A stretch of 63,651 nucleotides of DNA, filler included, from Lenisia limosa (Eukaryota; Protista; Breviatea): NCBI GenBank assembly GCA_001655205.1. It is 15 parts of 15 records of this genome, joined end to end, with 100 filler letters (N's around TTAATTAATTAA, not from the genome) between each part and the next. Parts side by side here need not be neighbours in the genome. Positions count along the whole stretch, not along the records: positions 9,756 to 20,971 come from LPNZ01001366.1; 14 more parts are not named here. One strand, 5' to 3'. Below the pieces are notes generated by a model. It saw only the letters and a program-made list of their open reading frames with translations. It ran no database searches and had not been told where the DNA came from. Of this stretch, positions 9,314-22,689 are shown one piece after another. The position numbers were made by a program, and so were the translations under genes. Each line of letters starts with the position of its first letter. The stretch's first letter is position 1.

Positions 9314-10055
9314 CTACAGGGAAAGTCAAGGACGTTTCTTTGGGACATAATAGGATTAGGGCTGAGGGCAATAATTTTTTTTGAGATAATCAAGCCAATT
9401 TGAAATTAGGTGAACATTTGTCTCAATTACCGTCCCAGGATAATATTCAAGCATTTTATCACTTTTGGGTCATTTTCAGACATGTGTGAACAATCACTGT
9501 CCACGACGTGGCGTGTGACCGACAAGTCTCAAACATGTTCACCATTTCGACTCGGAAGTCGGCCATATGATCATATCACATGGCTATGGTTTAGTAGATA
9601 CCCTCCCTCCCACATCAAGTATCATGCGGGTTAAGATACCCTCCCTCCCACATCANNNNNNNNNNNNNNNNNNNNNNNNNNNNNNNNNNNNNNNNNNNNT
9701 TAATTAATTAANNNNNNNNNNNNNNNNNNNNNNNNNNNNNNNNNNNNNNNNNNNNGGGTGTTTCTAAAAAGCGTTCGCGTTCATGGGAGTGTTCGCGTTC
9801 ATGTATAGTCACCTAAATGTAGAAATCCATTAAGTCTTAGAAATCCGAAGATACTTATTGGAATCCCAAGTCAGCCGTAGTATTTCACTATTTAGGTTGA
9901 CGTTGTGAGGTGTCTCTTCTCTGAGTTCATAGACAAGGCTAAAGTGGTGGGTAATGAGGGTTGCGTGCTATTAATTGGAAAGATGTAAAGTGGAACATAT
10001 CGCTGCTTCAATTACCTTATTAGGCAACTGATTCATTCCTAACTTACCTTTTTAG

Positions 10056-11621
10056 GCAACCGAGTTTTCAGAACTCGTAGAAGCCCAAAAAGAGATGCTC
10101 AACCAGTTAGCCCTTCAGTGCCTTCTCACCTCCCCTCAAAGTTCGTTTTGGATGAATTGTCATACTCCACTCTCCCAGGGGCTTCCCTTGGTAAATCCTC
10201 GAAAGCTGATATTTACTTGTCTTTTACAAGCCGAAGTGAAACCCAAAGGAATAGTAATATATACATGTACATATATACGTACACTGACCCCGAGACGGGG
10301 AATCGACTTGGGGTTCTCGTGCCCCCCTCCACGTAATTTTTATTTTATTTTGACTACTTTTTGATTTCCTCATGCAATTATTCTTCTATTCATCGAAATA
10401 CACCCTCCCCCCTGATGGGATGCGGTGCTGCAGAAGCGACTGGCTTGGGATTTGTTTGTTTTATTGTTACCAATCCTTTTGTGTTGTCAGCCAACAGAGT
10501 TGATTAAGGTTTATTTTTCATAAATCTTCCAATTTTACTTCCCCCCCAGTCAACGCGCTTCTCCTTTCCTTCTGTCACCATTCCCACCATTTCTATGAGT
10601 CTCTTCGCGCATTTGCGAAGCACCCCAACCACTTCAACCAAACAACTGCAAAGGTATGTTCACCCCCGCGTTTTCAAATTTCATAGTGTATCATCTCAAA
10701 AATATGCTATATCGATATGTACATTGTACATATGTTCAATTTCCTTCTTTTTTACGTATGCTCGGGCCAGCTATTAGTATTATGATGGGTTATGACCGTT
10801 AATAAGTTGGATTGTTTTTAACATTTCCCTTACTTTTACCCCCCCCCCCCCATTTNNNNNNNNNNGACAAGAGTTAACCGACGGTTCTTTTGAAATCTTG
10901 GGAGATCGGATGGGCTCTTTTTGTTTCATAAATTGTCCCATTTTGATTTTGGGCTTTTTTTGTTTGTTTGTTTCATAAATTTTGCAATCAAAGGCTGGCT
11001 TGGGCTTGTTTTTGTTTTTGTGTTTTTGTCATCTGGCTTTTGTCTAGTTTTAGCGTTGGTTGCTTGTGTTTGTTATTGCTGGTTTTTAGATTACATATTT
11101 GGCATTATCAAAGCTCCAAATCAAATTAAGTATACCTAATTTAACCATTTAGGTTTGTCCGGAGGCCGAGGCGATCTTCAATGAAAAGTTTAACCCCCTC
11201 GAATCCGTATGCAGGGCTTTGGTTCTTCGTTTTATATCAATTTATTTGTTTCAACTATTTATCATTTTATTTTCCGCTCAGCTTTGGGAGGAGGGGGGTA
11301 AGGCGAAGGGGTTTTGTCTTGGCTTCAGCCCTTGTGGTATTCTGCCAACAGAGTTAATTATGGGGCTCTTAATGTGGGTCGTCCCGTCTGTAATGATAAG
11401 TTTATCCCAAGAATCTGAATTGGAGGATATTGCAGGGGGCAAGGAGATGAGAGAGGGAGATCCCTCCATTTTCCTAAGTGACTTCTTAGGAAATTGATAA
11501 GACAACCCGATTGCTTCAGGCCTACCTCAAGCGACCTAGTGTTCTTGCAACCGCTCCCAAGATTGTCTCCGCGATATCTTTGATCTCGTTTAACGATCAT
11601 ATCCAATTGCGGGGGCTGTAG
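10056..11621 (+). CDS. Hypothetical protein, 3' part, multi-exon
   Basis: AG/GT-bounded open exons (ATEFSELVEAQKEMLNQ; VNALLLSFCHHSHHFYESLRAFAKHPNHFNQTTAK; VCPEAEAIFNEKFNPLES) and a terminal exon AYLKRPSVLATAPKIVSAISLISFNDHIQLRGL*. No family recognised. Confidence 0.45.
10417..10549 (+). mobile_element. Family B acceptor-carrying intronic repeat, full copy; others at about 3222-3298(+), 8031-8118(-), 8400-8490(-), 8784-8900(-), 23315-23327(+), 25984-26029(+), 27940-28036(-), 30038-30165(+), 33029-33105(+), 44567-44621(+), 48880-48950(+), 52088-52135(-), 54828-54946(-), 57456-57528(-), 63110-63226(+)
   Basis: Consensus gggatgcggtgc(t)gcagaagcgactggcctgggctttgtttgttttgttgttatcaaccctcgtgtgttgtcagccaacagagttgattttgggctttttttgtttcataaattttccaattttactcccccccAG. 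In several copies the terminal AG directly precedes an open exon. Confidence 0.85.
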
Positions 11622-12328
11622 AAGGGCGATGTGTTTGATTGTTTGTTTTTCAAAGTGGATGTGTATTAGTTGTTTTCAATGTGTCTTAATATTGTAACTT
11701 ATCGCATTTTCGAGGCGAATTTATTTCTTTTTTGTCTTTCCTTGTACGTACAATGATGTATAATAAGTTCGCACTACTGTGTACAACGAAAGATACGTTG
11801 GAGCCACGCAGGAATTTGTGTCAGAGATGTGACAGATGTTTGCTCTGATAAGAGTGATGGGACGGCTTTGGCTATATTACATTGTTTTATCTCTCATATC
11901 TTCTACTCACTACAAAATGTCGACACAAATTTGGGTGTCTAAAAAAGAGTTTTTGAAAAACGTCAAAATACCCTAAATTTCAATATCAAACTTCTATTTT
12001 TGATTTGTTTTAATCCAGTGTTACATTCACAAATTCATGTAAAAGGAAGGGCGGAGGGAGTGCTTTAGACACAATATCGCCTCCATTTGATACAATATCA
12101 TATGATGATAAGATATAGTATGTGTATATGATGTATTATTGTCTAAAAGGCAATAAATTGACGGATGAGAAGTATCAAAGAGTAGGAAGAAGATGTGTTC
12201 ATTAATACCCATATAATTTCAAAACGTGTGAATTTCATAAATATTCAAGAATTGGCAGTCTTTTAGAATTCTAAATGAGTAAGGCCCAAATTTCTAATCA
12301 TAGTAGAAATCTCTCTCATCAATCCTAC

Positions 12329-12372
12329 CAGCTCGGGGTCCTGATCCTTGGCCTTCCATGTCCAGTGTTGTC
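12329..12372 (-). other. 44-nt exon-like unit, inverted twin of 12972-13015
   Basis: 35/44 nt identical by manual alignment to the + strand unit; same ttgaatcctca upstream context and gtagga donor. Encodes (TTLD)MEGQGSGPRA. Confidence 0.7.
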
Positions 12373-12971
12373 CTAGTGAGGATTCAAAGTAGAGATTGGT
12401 TTACAGGGCTACAAATGTGAATTTCACCTTAGCGTAATTGCCCCTGAATTCACACCACCCCAGTTTTAGATTAGACGGAAGTTACGAAATTAAAACCCCA
12501 AAGGTTCTGAGGAGATGAATTGTTTACAACATACCATATTTGGAAGAACTCTTCCGTTTGTTCCGTTTCAAAATTACATGACTTATAATATTTCGTCAAT
12601 TCGGGAGTATAAACCCGTGTGATATTATTAGTTGTACTTTCAACCGAATAGTAGTTGCAGAAGTCACACAAATCAAACAGCAATCAATCAAGCACTTGTC
12701 CTGGCTCAGTCATTCATTGAAGGTATAATATACATAATCTCTGTTCTTTTGGATCTTTCCCCACTTTTCCAACGCCTTCCATTTAAATTATTATTTGACA
12801 GTTGTTTCCTTTTGCCTGTTTTTATTATTCATGACTTCATTTTATTCATCTCTTGAACCTTTGGGTTTATAATTTTAGGACCTACTAGAGCTTCACTAAC
12901 AAGAATTCAGGAATGGAAAGTGAAGCTCTACAATTTATTTATATCGCCCAATCTTTTCTTTGAATCCTCAG

Positions 12972-15900
12972 GAAAACAACTGAAATGGGAGGCCCAGGAT
13001 CAGGACGTCGAGCTGGTAGGATCAATGGCAAAATACCCCCGTCCAACCTGAAATGAAGGGTGTAGTTTCTACCTTCGGACTGGCCGCGGTCGAGCCGAGG
13101 TTGAGGACCCTGGATCGGGAAAGTAGTTATCATATATACAGAGCTTCATTCGGTCTGTCTAAACCTGGCAATTTTCTTAGATTTACGAGAATCTGTCTTT
13201 TTTTAATGGGAATAAAGCCCTAAAATACATCTCTATACAAAAGAATACAAATCTATCAAAAATATCGCATAGTAGAACGGCTTGACCACGTTGTATTTCT
13301 CATCTCTATTCAAACTATTTACATTTCAGAAAGAAATGTAAAAGATACACATATTATATCATATATGTTTGTATTATGTACATACAACATAAACTGTATA
13401 TATATTACCCATGCTTCTTTAACGCTATCACATGCTATTCACGGTTCAGGTGGTGGTGGAGGAGGCGGAAAGTCATCAAGTGGTATGCAGATGTTTTTGC
13501 TTCAGTCTATTTATTATTTTGGATTCTGTTACGTTTCCTCTGTATTGTCTTTATGTATTACCGCTAAATCATACGATAGTCTTTTTGAGAGAGGATTGAT
13601 TAATAAATAAATCTGTTTTGGAAACAAAAAGAGAAGCTTTAATTACTATTGATCTTTAATTAGTTTTTAAGAGATCAAATTAGTTTTACAAAAACAGATA
13701 ACATTCCATTACACAGTTCAGGGGGTGGTGCTGGAGGAGGAAAATCATCAACTGTATCAAGCGGTATGATGGTGTTTCTGTTTCATTCTATTTTGTTGAG
13801 ATATCGATATTTACTTCTTGTCCTTAAAGTGTGCAACTAATCTGGAGTAATGTTCAGTTACATGAGTTTGCTTCCTGTTCACTATAATTTATGAGAGAAG
13901 TGTGACATTTCGATATTTTTACAGATATAGAGAAATTGGGTCTTTTTTTGTGACCGTAGGAAGCCTTGAACACTATTCATACTTCAATTCAGAGTGCTAT
14001 TTATAGATCACATTCAAATTAGTTAACGTTCTGAAAAAGGTGTAATGTACAATTTGTAACATATTATATTTTATATGTCACGTGATGGTGGTGGAGGCGG
14101 AAAGTCATCAAGTGGTATACAGGTGTTTCTGTTTTATTTACATCATGATATGAATGTGAAAAATTGGTATTTACTCAAAAAATCTGAGAAATAACGTCTT
14201 TTTTGGGACTGCATGGAAGCTGTTCATACAATTCATTCTTCAATTAAGAGAGTTTTTTAGAGATCACCTTCAAGTTAGTTTTGCTAAATAGACAACATGC
14301 TAAAAAATGTGTCATGTGTACAATTTGTCACCTATCTTCTATTCACAGTTCAGGTCGAGGCGGAAAGTCATCAAGTGGTATGCAGGTGTTTCTAGTTTAG
14401 TCTATTTATTATTTTGGATTTTTTTACATTTTCATACAATAGTTTTTATCTATCTAGGTGTGAAATATTGATTAATAGAGGATTAAGATTGCGTTAGGGC
14501 GGAAAGGAAATGTTACATACTATTCATCCTTTAATGCAGAGTGATTTCGAGATCAAATTAGAATTTTTGTGCAATATGTTGACAAAATTGTATTGTGTAA
14601 AATATGTTACCTAATTCTATTACACAGTTGGTGGAGGCGGAAAGTCATCAAGCGGTAGGCATGTTTTGTTTCATTCTATACGATATATTATTTTTTATTT
14701 GTACATTATAAAGTAACGGTCCTCGACTGTTTTGACCTGGTTTTAGGGGGGTGTAATTTTAGGTGTACAATCGTTACCCTATATTATTATTTAATTCTTT
14801 TCTTTGAAGTGTGATATACATCGAGAGTAATGATCAATTACAGCATTATTACTTTGGTCTTCACTTTCATTTATGATAGAAGTGTGAAGTTTCGATATTT
14901 ATTGATTTTTTTCGAGAAATTAAATCTTTATTGTGACCGCAATCCTTCAATTCAGAGTGTTTGAGACATTCAAGTTAGTTTTGCAAAAATAGACAACATG
15001 CTGCTATATCCAAAATGTATAATTTGTTACCCACCACATTCTATTCCACAGTTCAGGTGGTGGTGGTGGAGGCGAAAAGTCATCAAGAGGTATGCAGATG
15101 TTTCAGTCTACTTATTCTTGAATTTAAAGTATACAGTACTGCTAAATCATACTATTAACAACGATTTTCTTGTATTGCATGCAATAATTATTTAAGTTTG
15201 TTTATGTTTTTTATATATTGAATCAAGGAAAAGGGGGAAATACACATGAGGTTGATATCCATAAGGAAGCATCTTGAACAAAGTACAACCACAGACTGAT
15301 GAAAATGGATATTTATGTGTTAAAAAATAAACACAAAAATATATACCCTTTATTTTATAAATGGTGGTTCAATTTCATCATCAAACCAAAGTGGTATTAA
15401 TCTGTTTTCGTGTCTCTTTTAGTCCATTCGTATTGTATTTGATGAAAAGAAAACATTTCAGACAACTGGCGCCCCACACAACATGAAGGACTGACAAAGG
15501 CTGGTGTTTCTGATAGTTGGCTATAATAAATAAGATTATGTGTTAAGCTAGCGATACAGTCAATAATACGTCCTTTTTAATTACACAGGACGTTGCGGAC
15601 CTAAAACTCAATCTTCTCAACAAGGTCAGCCCCGCCTGAATCCTCAGTATTATTATTTTTTTATGGTTCAAATAGATATCTAATATTGTGAATTATCCAA
15701 AGAAACCCTGACAAGGACAACTTTGATCAAGTTTAAGTCAATTGAAATGTGTTTTTAGATGATAAATATCCATAAGGATCACATATGACACCAGAAATTC
15801 AAAAAGTTGGAAAAATTACCTGTGTTAAATTTTTTTGAGTAAAATTTATCCTGCCTTAAATCGTTCTTGTCAAAGACATACATCATATCTTAATGAATTC

Positions 15901-17720
15901 CTATTATTCCGTTTTATAGTTCAGGAGGAGGTTCAGTCAACGATACGAAACCAAAACGTAAGCGTCAGTACCAGTGTCTATTGCAGTCCATTCCTCTATT
16001 TTTGATGAAAAGTAACATTTTTATTAGATAACTACCGGCCTACCGAACATGAAGGACTTACAAAACATCAAACCATTGATAGTAGGCGAAAATACAACGT
16101 TAATATTAATTTTGTACAACAAAAATGCTTCACGAAACCTCAAGCAATAACCCTGTTTTGACAAGATCACGTGGTGACACTAATACTGAATTGTATGCAG
16201 GCGCAGAAAGCTGTGTGCAAAGGGTTGTAAGGCAGTGAATTTTACTATACTATAATGCAATATCTCTGATAAGCGTGATGGTGTGGACGGCATCGGCCAG
16301 ATACAACTATTTTTTTATTTCTCATCTCTAGGACAGGACTAAAAGGATTTTGGACCAGAGCCGAATCCTAAGTCAGATTATTTTAAGCTATAAATCCGAG
16401 TTTCTGCCAAAAATCCAACTAGGATGATTTTCTATATTGAGTTTCGTTCATGTAATAACTTTGTATTAGAAAGGACGAAGGAGTATAAGCTTAGTTTGAA
16501 GCCTGACAGCAGTGATAATAAAGTAACTGGGTAGAATGTTTATCACATTGGTTCACACGTCGAACAATCATTTTCCGTAGTCATACATATGGTAGCTCAT
16601 AACTACTCGTATGATAATTGACCGACAACAAGTCTCAATGATACTCTAACACACTCAATATGAGCCCTCATCTTATCTTTGTTCATCAATTCGACTCGAA
16701 AGTCGGTCATATTCATTTTTTTATCATTTTCAAACACCTGAACAATCATTTACCACAGTATTATGATACCTTATAAGTCTCAATAATACTCTGACACACT
16801 CTGAATGAACCCTCTTCTTATCTTCGTTCTAGTGCTTCTGTATTCTCTCAAAAGAGTCATTTTTCGGTGAATATTCGAAAATTATCGATACTTTTACTGT
16901 CTTTTTCCGACCTTAGAGAAGCTCTAGTTGGTATTCAGTACGTTAAATGTTCAGTGGACTGAATAGTGACTTTGTTCCAATTATAACGAATCAATATCTT
17001 CACTTTGTGTTTTATTTATTTAATTTGTTTAGGACTCTCAGCTTTGGGATTTATTTCACGGTAGATGGGTCTCGGGAAAATTAACACTCTAAACTGATGT
17101 TGTTTTTATTGTTACCCACTCGCATACTCCAAAAACCATCATAGAGGGCCCCGTACGATCTAAAGAAGACCGATAAAAGAGTGATTTTTTCAAGGATTTA
17201 ATAAAGGATTCAGTCTTGTGTGGGGACCTTAGGGAACTCATACATATTATTATCACCATATTGCTATAGTATTCATATGATATGATATACAATCCCAAAA
17301 TGTACATTACAATACACAAAAACTATACATTACATATTCTACGCCTTTGGCTTCCCTACCGTCCTTGAAAAACAGGAAAATGGAGATATTTATCTAGGAT
17401 GCAAAATTTGAAGTGTGGATACAAAATCAATTTCTGATAATTTCAAATTTTGTCAATTAATTTCTTCAAAATATAAGAAAAAAGGAGTCCTAAGAAATAA
17501 ATTAAAACCGACATCATATTATTTCTGATTTCTCAGATGGATATATTGAACCAGTTTCGTCGCCATCACCAATTCCTCAAAGAGAGACACCAAAAAAGCT
17601 TCCGTCGCCATCACCAATAGCTCAAAGAGAGACATCAAAAGAGCTTCTGCCATATTTGCCTTTGTCAAATAATGGAAATTGCAGTATTACTCTAGATCTC
17701 TTTGACTCTGAGAGCAAGGT
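12972..17720 (+). CDS. Micro-exon gene encoding a Gly/Ser-rich (GGGGKSSS-repeat) then Ser/Pro-rich region; probably continues to about 20200
   Basis: Exons are 12972(ATG 12985)-13015, 13450-13482 (33 nt), 13722-13763 (42), 14354-14377 (24), 14628-14654 (27), 15057-15089 (33), 15589-15624 (36), 15925-15957 (33), and a longer exon from about 17537 (GYIEPVSSPSPIPQRETPKKLPSPSPIAQRETSKELLP). All micro-exons are AG/GT bounded, phase 1-1 and multiples of 3. Confidence 0.6.
13380..15130 (+). repeat. Tandem exon+intron duplication, about 6 units of 260-430 bp
   Basis: Repeated cacagttcag...ggcggaaagtcatcaag(t/c)g|gtatgc plus shared intron blocks (gagatcac..tcaa.ttagtt, cttcaattcagagtg, aatttgttacc). 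A second-level duplication pairs 15400-15530 with 15965-16070. Confidence 0.85.
17567..17650 (+). repeat. 45-bp coding tandem repeat x2 (SPSPIPQRETPKKLP / SPSPIAQRETSKELL)
   Basis: cgtcgccatcaccaat..ctcaaagagagaca.caaaa.agcttc occurs twice. Confidence 0.8.
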
Positions 17721-20700
17721 TTGCTAGGGGGTGAACTTGTATAGTGGTTTACTATATCGTATATAATAGTATGCAGTAGATACTGTAATATTTGATGAAT
17801 TTCATTTAGTGGGAATGTTTGAAAGTGACTTTGATATGGAAGGGTTAGCGTTAGGGAAGCCCCAAATATATTTATATATATCATATATATTTTTATGATG
17901 CTATATATAATAGTAATACTAATCACCCATATCCAAGTAATATTATAATATGACCGACTTTTGAGCAGTTTACAGATGAAGGTAACAGATAGTTAGCTCA
18001 TCTTGAGTGTATCACAGTATCATTGATATATCAGATAATTATCATAGGGCTGGATATGAGGTATCATATCGCAGCGTGGAAAGTGATCCAAAAATTGGTA
18101 GTATTTGAATCTTCCAGCAATTGACAACTACGAGTCCAGACGTATCAATCGTGTTTCTAAAAAATGTGAGTGAAAGAAGTCTCTACACGTATCTACATGA
18201 TTTTTTTTTATTTTACTAAGAGTGAAGGATCGCTATGGATCCCACTAATCTTTCGCTTTAATAATTGTCAAATGTTTATTATTTATCACCCCCAGTCATC
18301 TATACTACCCCTATCATCTTTACTCCATCACTCAAATACACCTCTATCAACTTGATGTATGCCTCTCACATATTCAGGGTCAAAAAAATTACTATTCGAT
18401 GCGTTTCCGAGGTCATAACTTCTATTCAATTGATTTTGATCTTGATGTTTGTTGTCTGGGATCTAAGGCTTTACTTTGATTCGAAAGAGGCTGAATTTAT
18501 CAATAAATCCTAAACTATCAATATTTTACCAAACTTTTTCGAACCGAAGACCAAGTCCTGACTGATATTGAGTTTTAACTTTGTAAATCGTATCAGGACT
18601 TACACAGTGACCGTGAAAACTCCTGACACGGATATTGATTTAGCTTTATAATTGCTAATCTAAAGGTGTCAGGATTTATCATGGTAAGGTTATGATAGAA
18701 AGAAATATTCAAAAGGATCAAATCGCAGGGAATTGTTGCAATTAATTTGTTCCAGAAATATATCGTGAAAATTTGAAATTCTGTAGCATGTATATATGTA
18801 ACCTTTCAATTCACAATTGATTTCTCTATTAATAACACGGTCTTACATCTATTTACAAAGAGCATCAGGGTACAATATGCACTATGCGCTTGGAGCATTG
18901 ACTTGGTTTTCATAGTAAAAAGTTATTGTTCCATTTATTTACATGAAAATCCCATGCTATAGGAAGCTGAAGAATTTATGAGATTACAAAATACTACATG
19001 GAAATTACAAGTCAATGCGCAATTTTGAATATTCTTATGACAATTTTCCAAAATATATTTGTTTTCTAAATTCAATAAAAGTTCAATTACGTATATTCAA
19101 AACATTTTCAATAATATTGAAGGACGCCTCAGTGAATGAGACCATGTTGTTTTATCTGATTGTGACTGGCGAAAACAACAAAATCTCGCAAACTTTGGAA
19201 GTGACAATGTGAGTACGTTGGATCAATATTTGTAAGGCAAATGATTGGGTGAAGTATTTTGATACAAAATCCAATATCTCTTAAATCGTGATGATTTGGA
19301 AGGCTTTGTCCAGATACAACCTTTGTTTCTCATCTCTATAATGATGTATTCTAACTTCCCACGAACAGTGTTTTTTTATACTCTAGTTTCTCAATTAATT
19401 GTTGCAGCGACTCACTTCCTTTCCACTACAGTGTTCCCGTGAGCGCCTTCTCTCCAAGAAGAAATGCACTTCAAAAGAGGTGAGTAATAATTTTTTCACA
19501 TTTTTTAAGTCGAATTTTTGGCCCAATATACGGTTAAGACCCGAAAATCTGATAATTCGAGTTAGGATTATATTGCATACCACAATTGTGTTGGCTTATT
19601 TATAACACTGGAATAGATATTTGATTTGAAATTATTTTCATTTAACTCCTATCACAGTAAACCAATTCATCAGCATGTTGAAGAGTTGTCAAAATTTCTG
19701 AATGTCAAACGGCAAAAAGATCTCTACACTTGACTCAAAAGCTACTCTGCTGTAATATGTATATTCTTGACTTGACCGGACAATACTAATTTTACTTTCA
19801 CCGCACAATCCAGTTGTTTGAATGAATAAGAAAATGGGTAGAATCTGGCTGAAGCCGTCCAAACCATCATGCTCTTCAGAGATATTGGATTGTAGTGAAG
19901 TACTACTCCTCTTTCACAGTACCTTTTAAAAAGATTGATTCCGTTTGGTGGATATTGTCTGTATTTTGATTGTGTGGGGGGAAATAAATTGTTGGAAAAC
20001 CCGGCCTTGGGAAACCCTAGAGATAAAATTCGAGGGAGTATCATTAATTTTTATGGTTTCAATATTTTTTACTTCCCATGTAGCAATATGTATTCTTATT
20101 TCTTATTCAAAAAATTATTCTACGTCAATTTGAGTAATGAGCATCTCAGGAAGTCTATTTATTGTAATGATGCGGGTGGGCCCCACTTTCAGTACGAGCG
20201 AGCTAGGTCTCAGAAGCAACTTATATTGCGAATTGAGGTTAAAATAAAGACAGAATTTCTTGTATTTTACCAATATTGTCCGGACCGAAATGACACCGAG
20301 AAATTAATGTAAATTTTGGTTGGGTAATGAGAACATTTTTTTTAAAACATGTCAATTGATTTAAGTTTCTCAGATACCTAGTTGCAAAGTTGCAGGGTTA
20401 GGGGTATCGCTAACCCATCTCCTGAAATGATAGGAATCCCTTCCCGAGCCCCAGGTCACATAAAGTGGCAAAAAGTGAAAACCGGGGCAGACCCAGCACG
20501 AAGCAAAACAAGAAACAACAACAAAAAAAGCTTAAACATTTAAATAATAACATTTGAATAATAACATATGTCGCGTTCAGGTTGTAAAATATCCATATTT
20601 TTACTGGTACTGAGGATTTATCTAAAAATGTCTTTTTTGGAACCGAAAGTGAAGCCCTAATAAATACATTAAACAACGCAAGGACTAGACGAGGACGTGG

Positions 20701-22689
20701 TGCGTCATAGTGATCAAATCAGTGGCAAATTCCTCCAAGATCTAACAGGTCATTTTGGGGTTTGAGCAAGAAATCAGATATTGAGCTTTAATTTTTAGTT
20801 AATCGTATCAGGACTTATCGCGGTAACTGTATATACATTAAGAGCCTTAGAAAACAATAAATACATACACAGTCTGCGACAAGACTCCCCATAAGCTCAC
20901 CTTTTCAATGCCACCCCCCTCCCCAGGCCATCCCTTCCATTGTTGGTTCGTGTAGTCAATATTCTTCATCGNNNNNNNNNNNNNNNNNNNNNNNNNNNNN
21001 NNNNNNNNNNNNNNNTTAATTAATTAANNNNNNNNNNNNNNNNNNNNNNNNNNNNNNNNNNNNNNNNNNNNGAGAGGGGATTTGTCCTTCATTTTGATTG
21101 AAATCACTAAACTGGGGGCACAGTTTCTGGATGTGTTTGGGGGTATCTGAAATGATGATAAGAACAGCTGTTAACAATGATGACTTTGAATTTGAAAGAA
21201 AGCAAATAAAGGCAAAAGAAGAGCAATACTCCCCTCAGTACATTGGATGCTGGAACTGTAGAAGCAGCGGAATACAGGGAAGTTTTCCTCATTAAAAGCC
21301 TTCACGAGGGACCAGGAGCTTAACACGTTGCCAGCATAAGTGATGACCTAAACTGTAAAGAAGAAGAGGAAGGTAAGAGTTCACCAGCACCCCTACCAAA
21401 TTATCAAGTTCGATTCCGGAAATTTCCTTCATTTGATTGACGAAATGCTGAAACTCGGGAAATGCGGCTGGCTCTGGAAACGGAATTAGCGGATTGTCTT
21501 GCTGAATAGATCATTTTTTTTGATTTATTTACAATTTTATTTTACTCATTTAAGCTGACGTAAATGGGGCAAAAATAGCAAACAAACACAAAACTTATTT
21601 TTTCTGCCAAGTAATATACTAATCTTCACAAATTTCTTTGATGCAAGATCAATTGTTCAATTCGAGCTGAGGGCAAAGATGCCTCCAGCTCAGACCTTTA
21701 CGTTTATGTTAAGAGGTTATGATGATATCTTATTCACCCACTGCAGTGATATGCATTACAACTTCTATACGATTATACTGTAAGTGTATTAGTATTATAT
21801 CTTTTACCCATGATTAAACGGTCAACTGGGTTACAAATTGCAATGACGATTGGTGCTAGGGATATTGTACCTTGCTCCCCTCTACTTCCCCCATACTGCT
21901 CTGTTGGTTTAAAGCCTGGGTTTGGCATTGAACTTCACTATAGACAGGCTGAGGAGTGTTGGGGATGTCCAGAATGAATGGGAACGAAGACAGCATGTTT
22001 GAAGGGCTATTAGTAATACTACCACCTCACTACTACTGTATTCTTCTTCTGTGGTGTGACTCTGTGTGACTGAGACACTGTAAGCTAGGAGGTGTACAGA
22101 TATTATCTGTAAGAAAGAGAGCTAAATGTTACATATTTTTTACATTTATTGCATTTTATCACATCCACCTTTAAATCCTCCCATCACACCACTCCACCTC
22201 ACCTCCTCCTCCATTCCTCCTCTGCACTCCACAACCACAACTCTACCACAACAATTAGAATAGAAGGAAGAAGTGAAAAAGAAGATGAAAGAAGAGTAAA
22301 AAGTAATCACGTAATAACTACAAGCTGCAACAAAAGAAGAGGTGGCAAAATGGTGGACACGGGAGCACTTCCTCACCCATGGTCGATTTACTTTGACGAA
22401 CCGACTGTCAGCGGGATGAAGGGATTTGAGGGGCTTTTGATGTGATACTGCCTATGTTGGAGATTGGAATTATGCGCAAGGTTCTCGAACTATTGGTGTG
22501 CGTAAATGGGGGAGTTTTGATGCTATCATGATCCGTTATAAATATAATGAATGACCCATGTCCATTATTGAATCAATTATATGACCAACTTTCTAAACGA
22601 AATGAGGAACTAATATAACACTATCCCAAGTGTTTCAGAGTTTCATTGAGACTTTCTCGATGATATCGCTGCGTGGAAAGGATAGTTCA

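Follow-up and report, generated by a model that had tools for sequence, protein, structure and literature searches.

The window analysed here is a stretch of 63,651 nucleotides (filler included) from the assembly GCA_001655205.1 of Lenisia limosa, and our analysis covers the piece of it at positions 9756-20971 (LPNZ01001366.1), whose plus strand carries a tandem array of units that look like Gly/Ser-rich micro-exons. The array lies between a predicted first exon with a start codon and a longer Pro/Ser-rich exon, and comprises nine units in total, seven with an AG acceptor and two without, the GT donor being kept in 9/9. Every proposed exon boundary, length and phase was recomputed by script, and the translation was made exon by exon. 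The predicted exons and related units are the following, a residue in brackets being encoded by the split codon ahead of the exon:

12972..13015, plus strand: exon 1, with an AG acceptor at 12970-12971 and the donor G/gtagga, encoding MGGPGSGRRA and one further base
13450..13482, plus strand: micro-exon 2 (U1), 33 nt, phase 1-1, (G)GGGGGGKSSS
13722..13763, plus strand: micro-exon 3 (U2), 42 nt, phase 1-1, (G)GGAGGGKSSTVSS, with a 9-nt in-frame insertion
14082..14114, plus strand: relic unit U3, core identical to the consensus at 22/22 positions, GT donor intact, acceptor lost
14354..14377, plus strand: micro-exon 4 (U4), 24 nt, phase 1-1, (G)RGGKSSS
14628..14654, plus strand: micro-exon 5 (U5), 27 nt, phase 1-1, (V)GGGGKSSS
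15057..15089, plus strand: micro-exon 6 (U6), 33 nt, phase 1-1, (G)GGGGGEKSSR
15363..15395, plus strand: relic unit homologous to exon 8, 33 nt, Gly/Ser frame open, GT donor present (alignment A2; repeats D5, D10 and D11)
15589..15624, plus strand: micro-exon 7, 36 nt, phase 1-1, (G)RCGPKTQSSQQ, a diverged unit with a stop in phase 2
15925..15957, plus strand: micro-exon 8, 33 nt, phase 1-1, (G)GGSVNDTKPK
17537..17718, plus strand: exon 9, 182 nt, Pro/Ser-rich, open only when entered in phase 1

A first-pass annotation of this DNA had described seven micro-exons of 33, 42, 24, 27, 33, 36 and 33 nt (exons 2-8), each preceded by AG and followed by GT, and its coordinates, phases and translation all agree with our recalculation. 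The array is nevertheless larger than the seven it counted, as the units at 14082-14114 and 15363-15395, both without an AG acceptor, have to be added to the seven intact ones. Each of exons 2-8 enters and leaves in phase 1 and all lengths are multiples of 3, so that any subset of the array exons is frame-neutral; the split codon ahead of the exon encodes Gly in six of them and Val in the exon at 14628. A 17-nt motif, GGCGGAAAGTCATCAAG, occurs in six copies on the plus strand (with up to 3 mismatches), versus 0.05 expected from shuffles.

The acceptors of these units repay a closer description. In all intact GGKSSS units except the one at 14628 the AG is doubled (cacAGttcAG), with the two AGs 5 nt apart; doubled acceptors of the form cacAG ttcAG or tatAG ttcAG are seen at 13445-13449, 13717-13721, 14349-14353, 15052-15056 and 15920-15924. 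The second AG alone preserves the frame and the first would shift it, and acceptor choice could therefore act as an on/off switch or trigger nonsense-mediated decay. At 14628 (U5), as the earlier annotation had also proposed, a 2-nt deletion visible in alignment A1 removes the ttcag acceptor, and use of the upstream cacAG would turn a 24-nt exon into one of 27 nt, a net change of +3. The two relics differ from this unit in that no in-frame upstream AG that could rescue either of them was found on reading the sequence. In U3 both AGs of 'cacagttcag' are mutated (the tract now reads 'tatatgtcac'), leaving no usable acceptor; in the unit at 15363-15395, which matches the exon-8 unit over the exon and ∼190 nt of the following intron, 'tataa' stands in place of 'tatagttcag'. 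By canonical rules, both would be dead exons. The array introns measure 239-590 nt, a size that favours intron definition and would thereby help such small exons to be recognised.

It is well supported that the GGKSSS units represent diverged tandem copies of a single exon-plus-intron unit, an origin already put forward in the first-pass annotation. Compared with each other by BLAST, the units are 66-72% identical over 190-540 bp, and neighbouring array exons are paralogous together with their introns (BLAST, alignments A1 and A2), as in arrays formed by tandem exon duplication; the single phase class of the array exons, of which subsets keep the frame, is likewise that of a cassette-type array. 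Identity is not spread evenly along the unit: exon-centred segments of 51-102 bp reach 81-88% (BLAST), the 22-nt exon core has a pairwise identity of 93%, and values then fall to 85% in intron bases +1 to +8, 62% in bases +9 to +20, and ∼40% (ungapped) farther into the intron. On the 5′ side of the acceptor, conservation extends over about 18 nt in the five GGKSSS units that are intact (alignment A1). The conserved island thus runs from the acceptor tract through exon and donor into ∼15 nt of GU-rich intron, which is the footprint that would be expected of a functional small exon. It includes GTATGCAGGTGTTTC, a conserved donor-proximal element found after each donor and a candidate splicing enhancer. 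Longer matches at an offset of ∼980 bp (13808-14132 vs 14788-15107, repeat D8) indicate that part of the array grew via duplication of multi-unit blocks. Tandem Repeats Finder did not report the ∼270-bp array, because its units are less than 70% alike, and no further hidden units were found elsewhere in the piece 9756-20971.

Since every GGKSSS exon can be read through in any of the three frames, the micro-exons do not fix the reading frame, which has to be set by exons 1 and 9. The Gly/Ser frame is favoured by six independent points. At 12985 an ATG lies in a good context (A at -3, G at +4), preceded by a genomic in-frame TGA at a distance of 24 nt, and the coding part of exon 1 (31 nt, from 12985 to 13015) exits in phase 1; exon 9 is open only if entered in that phase; and exon 7 is closed in phase 2. 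If the first AG were used throughout, the exons would by calculation measure 38, 47, 29, 27, 38, 36 and 38 nt, and exon 9 would be entered in a closed frame. The frame survives each of several separate length changes (+9, -9, and -2 combined with a shifted acceptor for a total of +3, besides the exons of 36 and 33 nt), the unit at 14628 being the clearest case. Finally, the variable base of the Gly runs (T, A, C or G) falls at the wobble position of this frame. The GC content of the exons is 0.35-0.65 vs 0.325 in the introns, and 13/13 modelled exons have AG/GT boundaries and a frame open throughout. Coding on the minus strand was rejected, as the exon boundaries would read AC...CT there, making splicing impossible on that strand.

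Downstream of the array, the exons use phases 0 and 2. Exon 9 contains an in-frame 45-bp tandem duplication (17558-17647, 2.0 copies, 91% matches), the copies of which encode SPSPIPQRETPKKLP and SPSPIAQRETSKELL. The gene can be extended beyond exon 9 by four tentative exons:

18118..18165, plus strand: exon 10, model only, 48 nt, QLTTTSPDVSIVFLKN
19123..19208, plus strand: exon 11, model only, 86 nt
19408..19479, plus strand: exon 12, model only, 72 nt, two frames open, the choice between them following from exon 11
20193..20237, plus strand: exon 13, model only, 45 nt, after which the gene runs off the piece

Based on these observations, we favour the explanation, with a probability of roughly 0.6, that splicing joins the seven intact units downstream of exon 1 and that they encode a Gly/Ser/Lys-rich, probably disordered N-terminus of ∼76 residues, which is followed by the Pro/Ser-rich exon and a folded part. 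The locus would then be the 5′ part of a eukaryotic protein-coding gene on the plus strand. An ancestral unit of ∼270 bp, consisting of one Gly-rich micro-exon and its intron, would have given rise to nine tandem copies, partly by way of multi-unit blocks of ∼980 bp, and seven of these copies would have retained a polypyrimidine/AG acceptor and a G/GTA donor. Following MGGPGSGRRA, exons 2-8 would contribute G(n)-K-S-S-S modules, giving way to decayed, G/S/Q/N/K-rich variants towards the 3′ side, and the modules together would form a low-complexity N-terminal segment, perhaps a flexible linker, ahead of the Pro/Ser-rich exon and of further, ordinary exons. The two units already lacking an acceptor would represent exon death in progress. 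As every unit is symmetric, unequal crossing-over, exon death or skipping would alter the length of the segment only, and never the downstream frame.

A number of observations weigh against this explanation. The GGKSSS exons are, as said, open in every frame, and the differences between units had been described as largely synonymous, which proves overstated: there are four synonymous changes (GGC>GGA, AAG>AAA, and AGT>AGC twice), and these stand against three non-synonymous ones (G>R, G>E, S>R). The count was taken in the 21-nt core, and its differences are too few for a test; as an argument for coding selection they are weak. Length changes in GGN runs can arise from trinucleotide slippage alone, without selection. 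The acceptor region of the unit at 14082 has decayed and its core still agrees with the consensus at 22/22 positions, which fits short-tract gene conversion or a non-translational constraint at least as well as a very recent exon death. Between exon 8 and the unit at 15363 the exon is ∼52% identical (counted on alignment A2) vs 75% over 93 nt for the following intron, and the copies of the 45-bp duplication in exon 9 differ mostly non-synonymously. Exons 10-13, which are model only, have good splice sites and keep the frame; exon 12 can be read in two frames and exon 13 in at least two. Homologues were likewise not forthcoming in searches made with the exons one by one. The profile search by which the first-pass annotation hoped to identify an attached domain gave no Pfam match for exons 9, 11 and 12 (E up to 10), and the same exons found no match in PDB sequence searches. 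With exon 9, a word-index protein search returned no match, an exhaustive HMMER search against 1.84 billion representatives returned only two, both to unrelated Pro/Ser low-complexity sequence, and a back-translated search in metagenomes gave 600 pattern matches with 0 confirmed. An exact 29-mer (core and donor) found no related locus in metagenome, prokaryote-genome and viral collections. The blank searches say little either way, since animal genomes are scarce in the collections and exon 9, which alone has sufficient length for a search, is itself of low complexity. Collectively, the weakening points fit a fast-evolving disordered segment selected for composition and frame rather than for exact sequence, and leave equal room for a non-coding repeat. 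We regard the coding status of the array as plausible, not proven.

Such a non-coding repeat would consist of tandem units of ∼270 bp in an intron, an untranslated region (UTR) or intergenic DNA, with the GC-rich core maintained by gene conversion or by a function at the DNA or RNA level, and with AG/GT and open frames being incidental. It would account for cores open in three frames, for the perfect core of the acceptor-less unit at 14082, for an exon less conserved than its intron in the pair formed by exon 8 and 15363, and for the lack of any homologue or family in the protein, Pfam, PDB or metagenome searches. We nonetheless consider it unlikely, though to be taken seriously: at homologous sites AG is kept in 7/9 and GT in 9/9 units, acceptor tract, exon and donor are what the conserved island covers, the intact units are all multiples of three (including the one with a compensated acceptor shift), and the frame joins a good-context ATG to the sole open frame of exon 9. 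Another idea is that the micro-exons are spliced and not read as Gly/Ser, being either non-coding or 5′-UTR exons or, in phase 0, modules of the VEAESHQ type translated from an upstream start. Phase 0 is indeed open through exons 2-8 and the AG acceptor at 12971 permits an upstream exon; but phase 0 runs into a stop after 27 codons of exon 9, no ATG was found in a suitable exon between 12600 and 12985, and substitutions that are silent in the Gly frame would alter the amino acid in phase 0, which makes this reading quite improbable. The symmetric micro-exons of 24-42 nt had led the first-pass annotation to a comparison with the micro-exon genes (MEGs) of schistosomes, and the comparison holds only for the symmetry of the exons. 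That the locus encodes a secreted hypervariable protein built almost wholly of symmetric micro-exons, as MEGs do, seems to us very remote, however: micro-exons make up 228 of at least 692 modelled coding nt, or at most 33%, versus ∼80% in MEGs, and the exon-1 peptide MGGPGSGRRA has no hydrophobic stretch that could act as the signal sequence almost always encoded by MEGs (PMC5825161); the genomic sequence has an in-frame TGA 24 nt 5′ of the ATG, and an unseen upstream exon is conceivable.

The favoured explanation, that of a spliced and translated Gly/Ser-rich N-terminus, can be taken one step further. The exon-1 peptide matches the N-myristoylation pattern G-{EDRKHPFYW}-x(2)-[STAGCN]-{P} (regular expression; a pattern of low specificity), so that the earlier remark that MGGPGS fits this pattern is borne out, for a pattern that is weak. 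With Gly2 myristoylated and the inclusion of the micro-exons varying, the product could be a cytoplasmic protein with an N-myristoyl anchor, joined to its folded part by a tether that is tuned as up to seven symmetric Gly/Ser micro-exons are included in different combinations. We consider this scenario improbable.

Around exon 1, a genomic in-frame TGA lies at 12961, 24 nt 5′ of the ATG. The AG at 12970-12971 stands only 13 nt 5′ of the start codon, and could be the acceptor for an upstream 5′-UTR exon or, in taxa having that process, for spliced-leader trans-splicing. Two further features were recognised upstream:

12608..12613, plus strand: TATAAA, tentatively a core promoter element, ∼370 bp 5′ of the ATG
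12317..12399, minus strand: exon 1 copied in inverted orientation together with the flanks at its acceptor and donor (inverted repeats I2 and I4; 81-82%)

The TATAAA is the sole one between 12500 and 12990, and its role would be that of a possible promoter element. The inverted copy, located ∼600 bp upstream, matches positions 12948-13027 of the plus strand, i.e., exon 1 extended by 24 nt on its 5′ side and by 12 nt on its 3′ side (82% over 78 nt by BLAST); read on the minus strand it gives MEGQGSGPRA followed by gtagga, and with Glu at position 2 it is devoid of the myristoylation motif. A second inverted patch is formed by 12487-12520 and 12844-12875, and both patches together make up an imperfect palindrome that surrounds the putative promoter and has its centre near 12675. 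A full head-to-head paralogue was considered and rejected: no copies of the other exons of the gene were found on this side (upstream of 12317), and as only exon 1 is copied, this is a small inverted duplication rather than another gene.

The piece as a whole reads like intron-rich eukaryotic DNA, invertebrate-like in character. It is AT-rich (GC of 31-43% in 500-bp windows), its longest open reading frame does not exceed 125 codons, and an Rfam scan of it gave no match. At 10836-10866 a poly-C run leads into a 10-N assembly gap (10857-10866), and the sequences flanking this region may not be truly adjacent. An interspersed repeat of 60-80 bp, containing …GATAAGNGTGATGG…CCAGATACAAC…TTTCTCATCTCTA…, is present in four copies in both orientations (11843-11901, 16243-16330, 19268-19338 and 19825-19902; identity 76-81%), and probably represents a small mobile element with copies in introns and in upstream DNA. 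A 100-aa open reading frame lying over an interspersed repeat gave no match in a word-index protein search. Short repeat pairs are also found in the large introns, one inverted (16587-16713 / 17947-18069, 70%) and one direct (18564-18602 / 20777-20817, 88%).

If the exons are expressed, this locus would offer a compact and readable example of a disordered segment growing and shrinking through exon-plus-intron duplication, as well as a small natural system for the study of how exons of 24-42 nt are recognised. It displays side by side intact units, one that a compensating shift of the acceptor has rescued, and two from which the acceptor is gone. No new kind of mechanism would be involved, because tropoelastin, titin PEVK and the MEGs already show the principle, and building flexible segments by such duplication is an already known way.

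By organisation, the nearest parallel would be tropoelastin (ELN), in which all splice junctions are of phase 1:1 and exons can be removed cassette-like without change of frame (PMC12554196). Both have short, Gly-rich, Lys-containing exons in multiples of three with phase 1:1 junctions. There is no sequence relationship between the two, however, and tropoelastin is secreted and 1:1 throughout, whereas here only exons 2-8 are 1:1, the later exons use phases 0 and 2, and exon 1 encodes no signal peptide. The second closest parallel appears to be titin PEVK, in which short exons encode a disordered spring, grow or shrink in number as exons are duplicated or lost, and show differential inclusion (PMC6469411). 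Here too, short exons form an array in which each would supply a single module of a putatively disordered segment, and the array has undergone tandem exon duplication and loss; yet the composition is Pro/Glu/Val/Lys in titin vs Gly/Ser/Lys in our array, the exons number more than 100 vs 7-9, the protein context is another one, and splicing variation is documented for titin and hypothetical for the array. MEGs have ∼80% of their coding sequence in symmetric exons of 6-36 bp (PMC5825161); exons 2-8 share this symmetry, which would allow variation via exon skipping (PMC5825161), and the gene differs from MEGs in the far lower share of micro-exons and in the absence of a signal peptide from the exon-1 peptide. 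A resemblance of another kind links the predicted N-terminus to N-myristoylated disordered proteins, with Met-Gly at the N-terminus, position 3 occupied by a small residue and position 6 by Ser, followed by a low-complexity basic/polar region. MARCKS and BASP1 are examples of such proteins; no homology to the array gene was found, and the pattern matched is a weak and common one. If the lipid-anchored tether were nonetheless real, the principle of MEGs and PEVK would here be applied to an intracellular membrane-tethered protein outside schistosomes.

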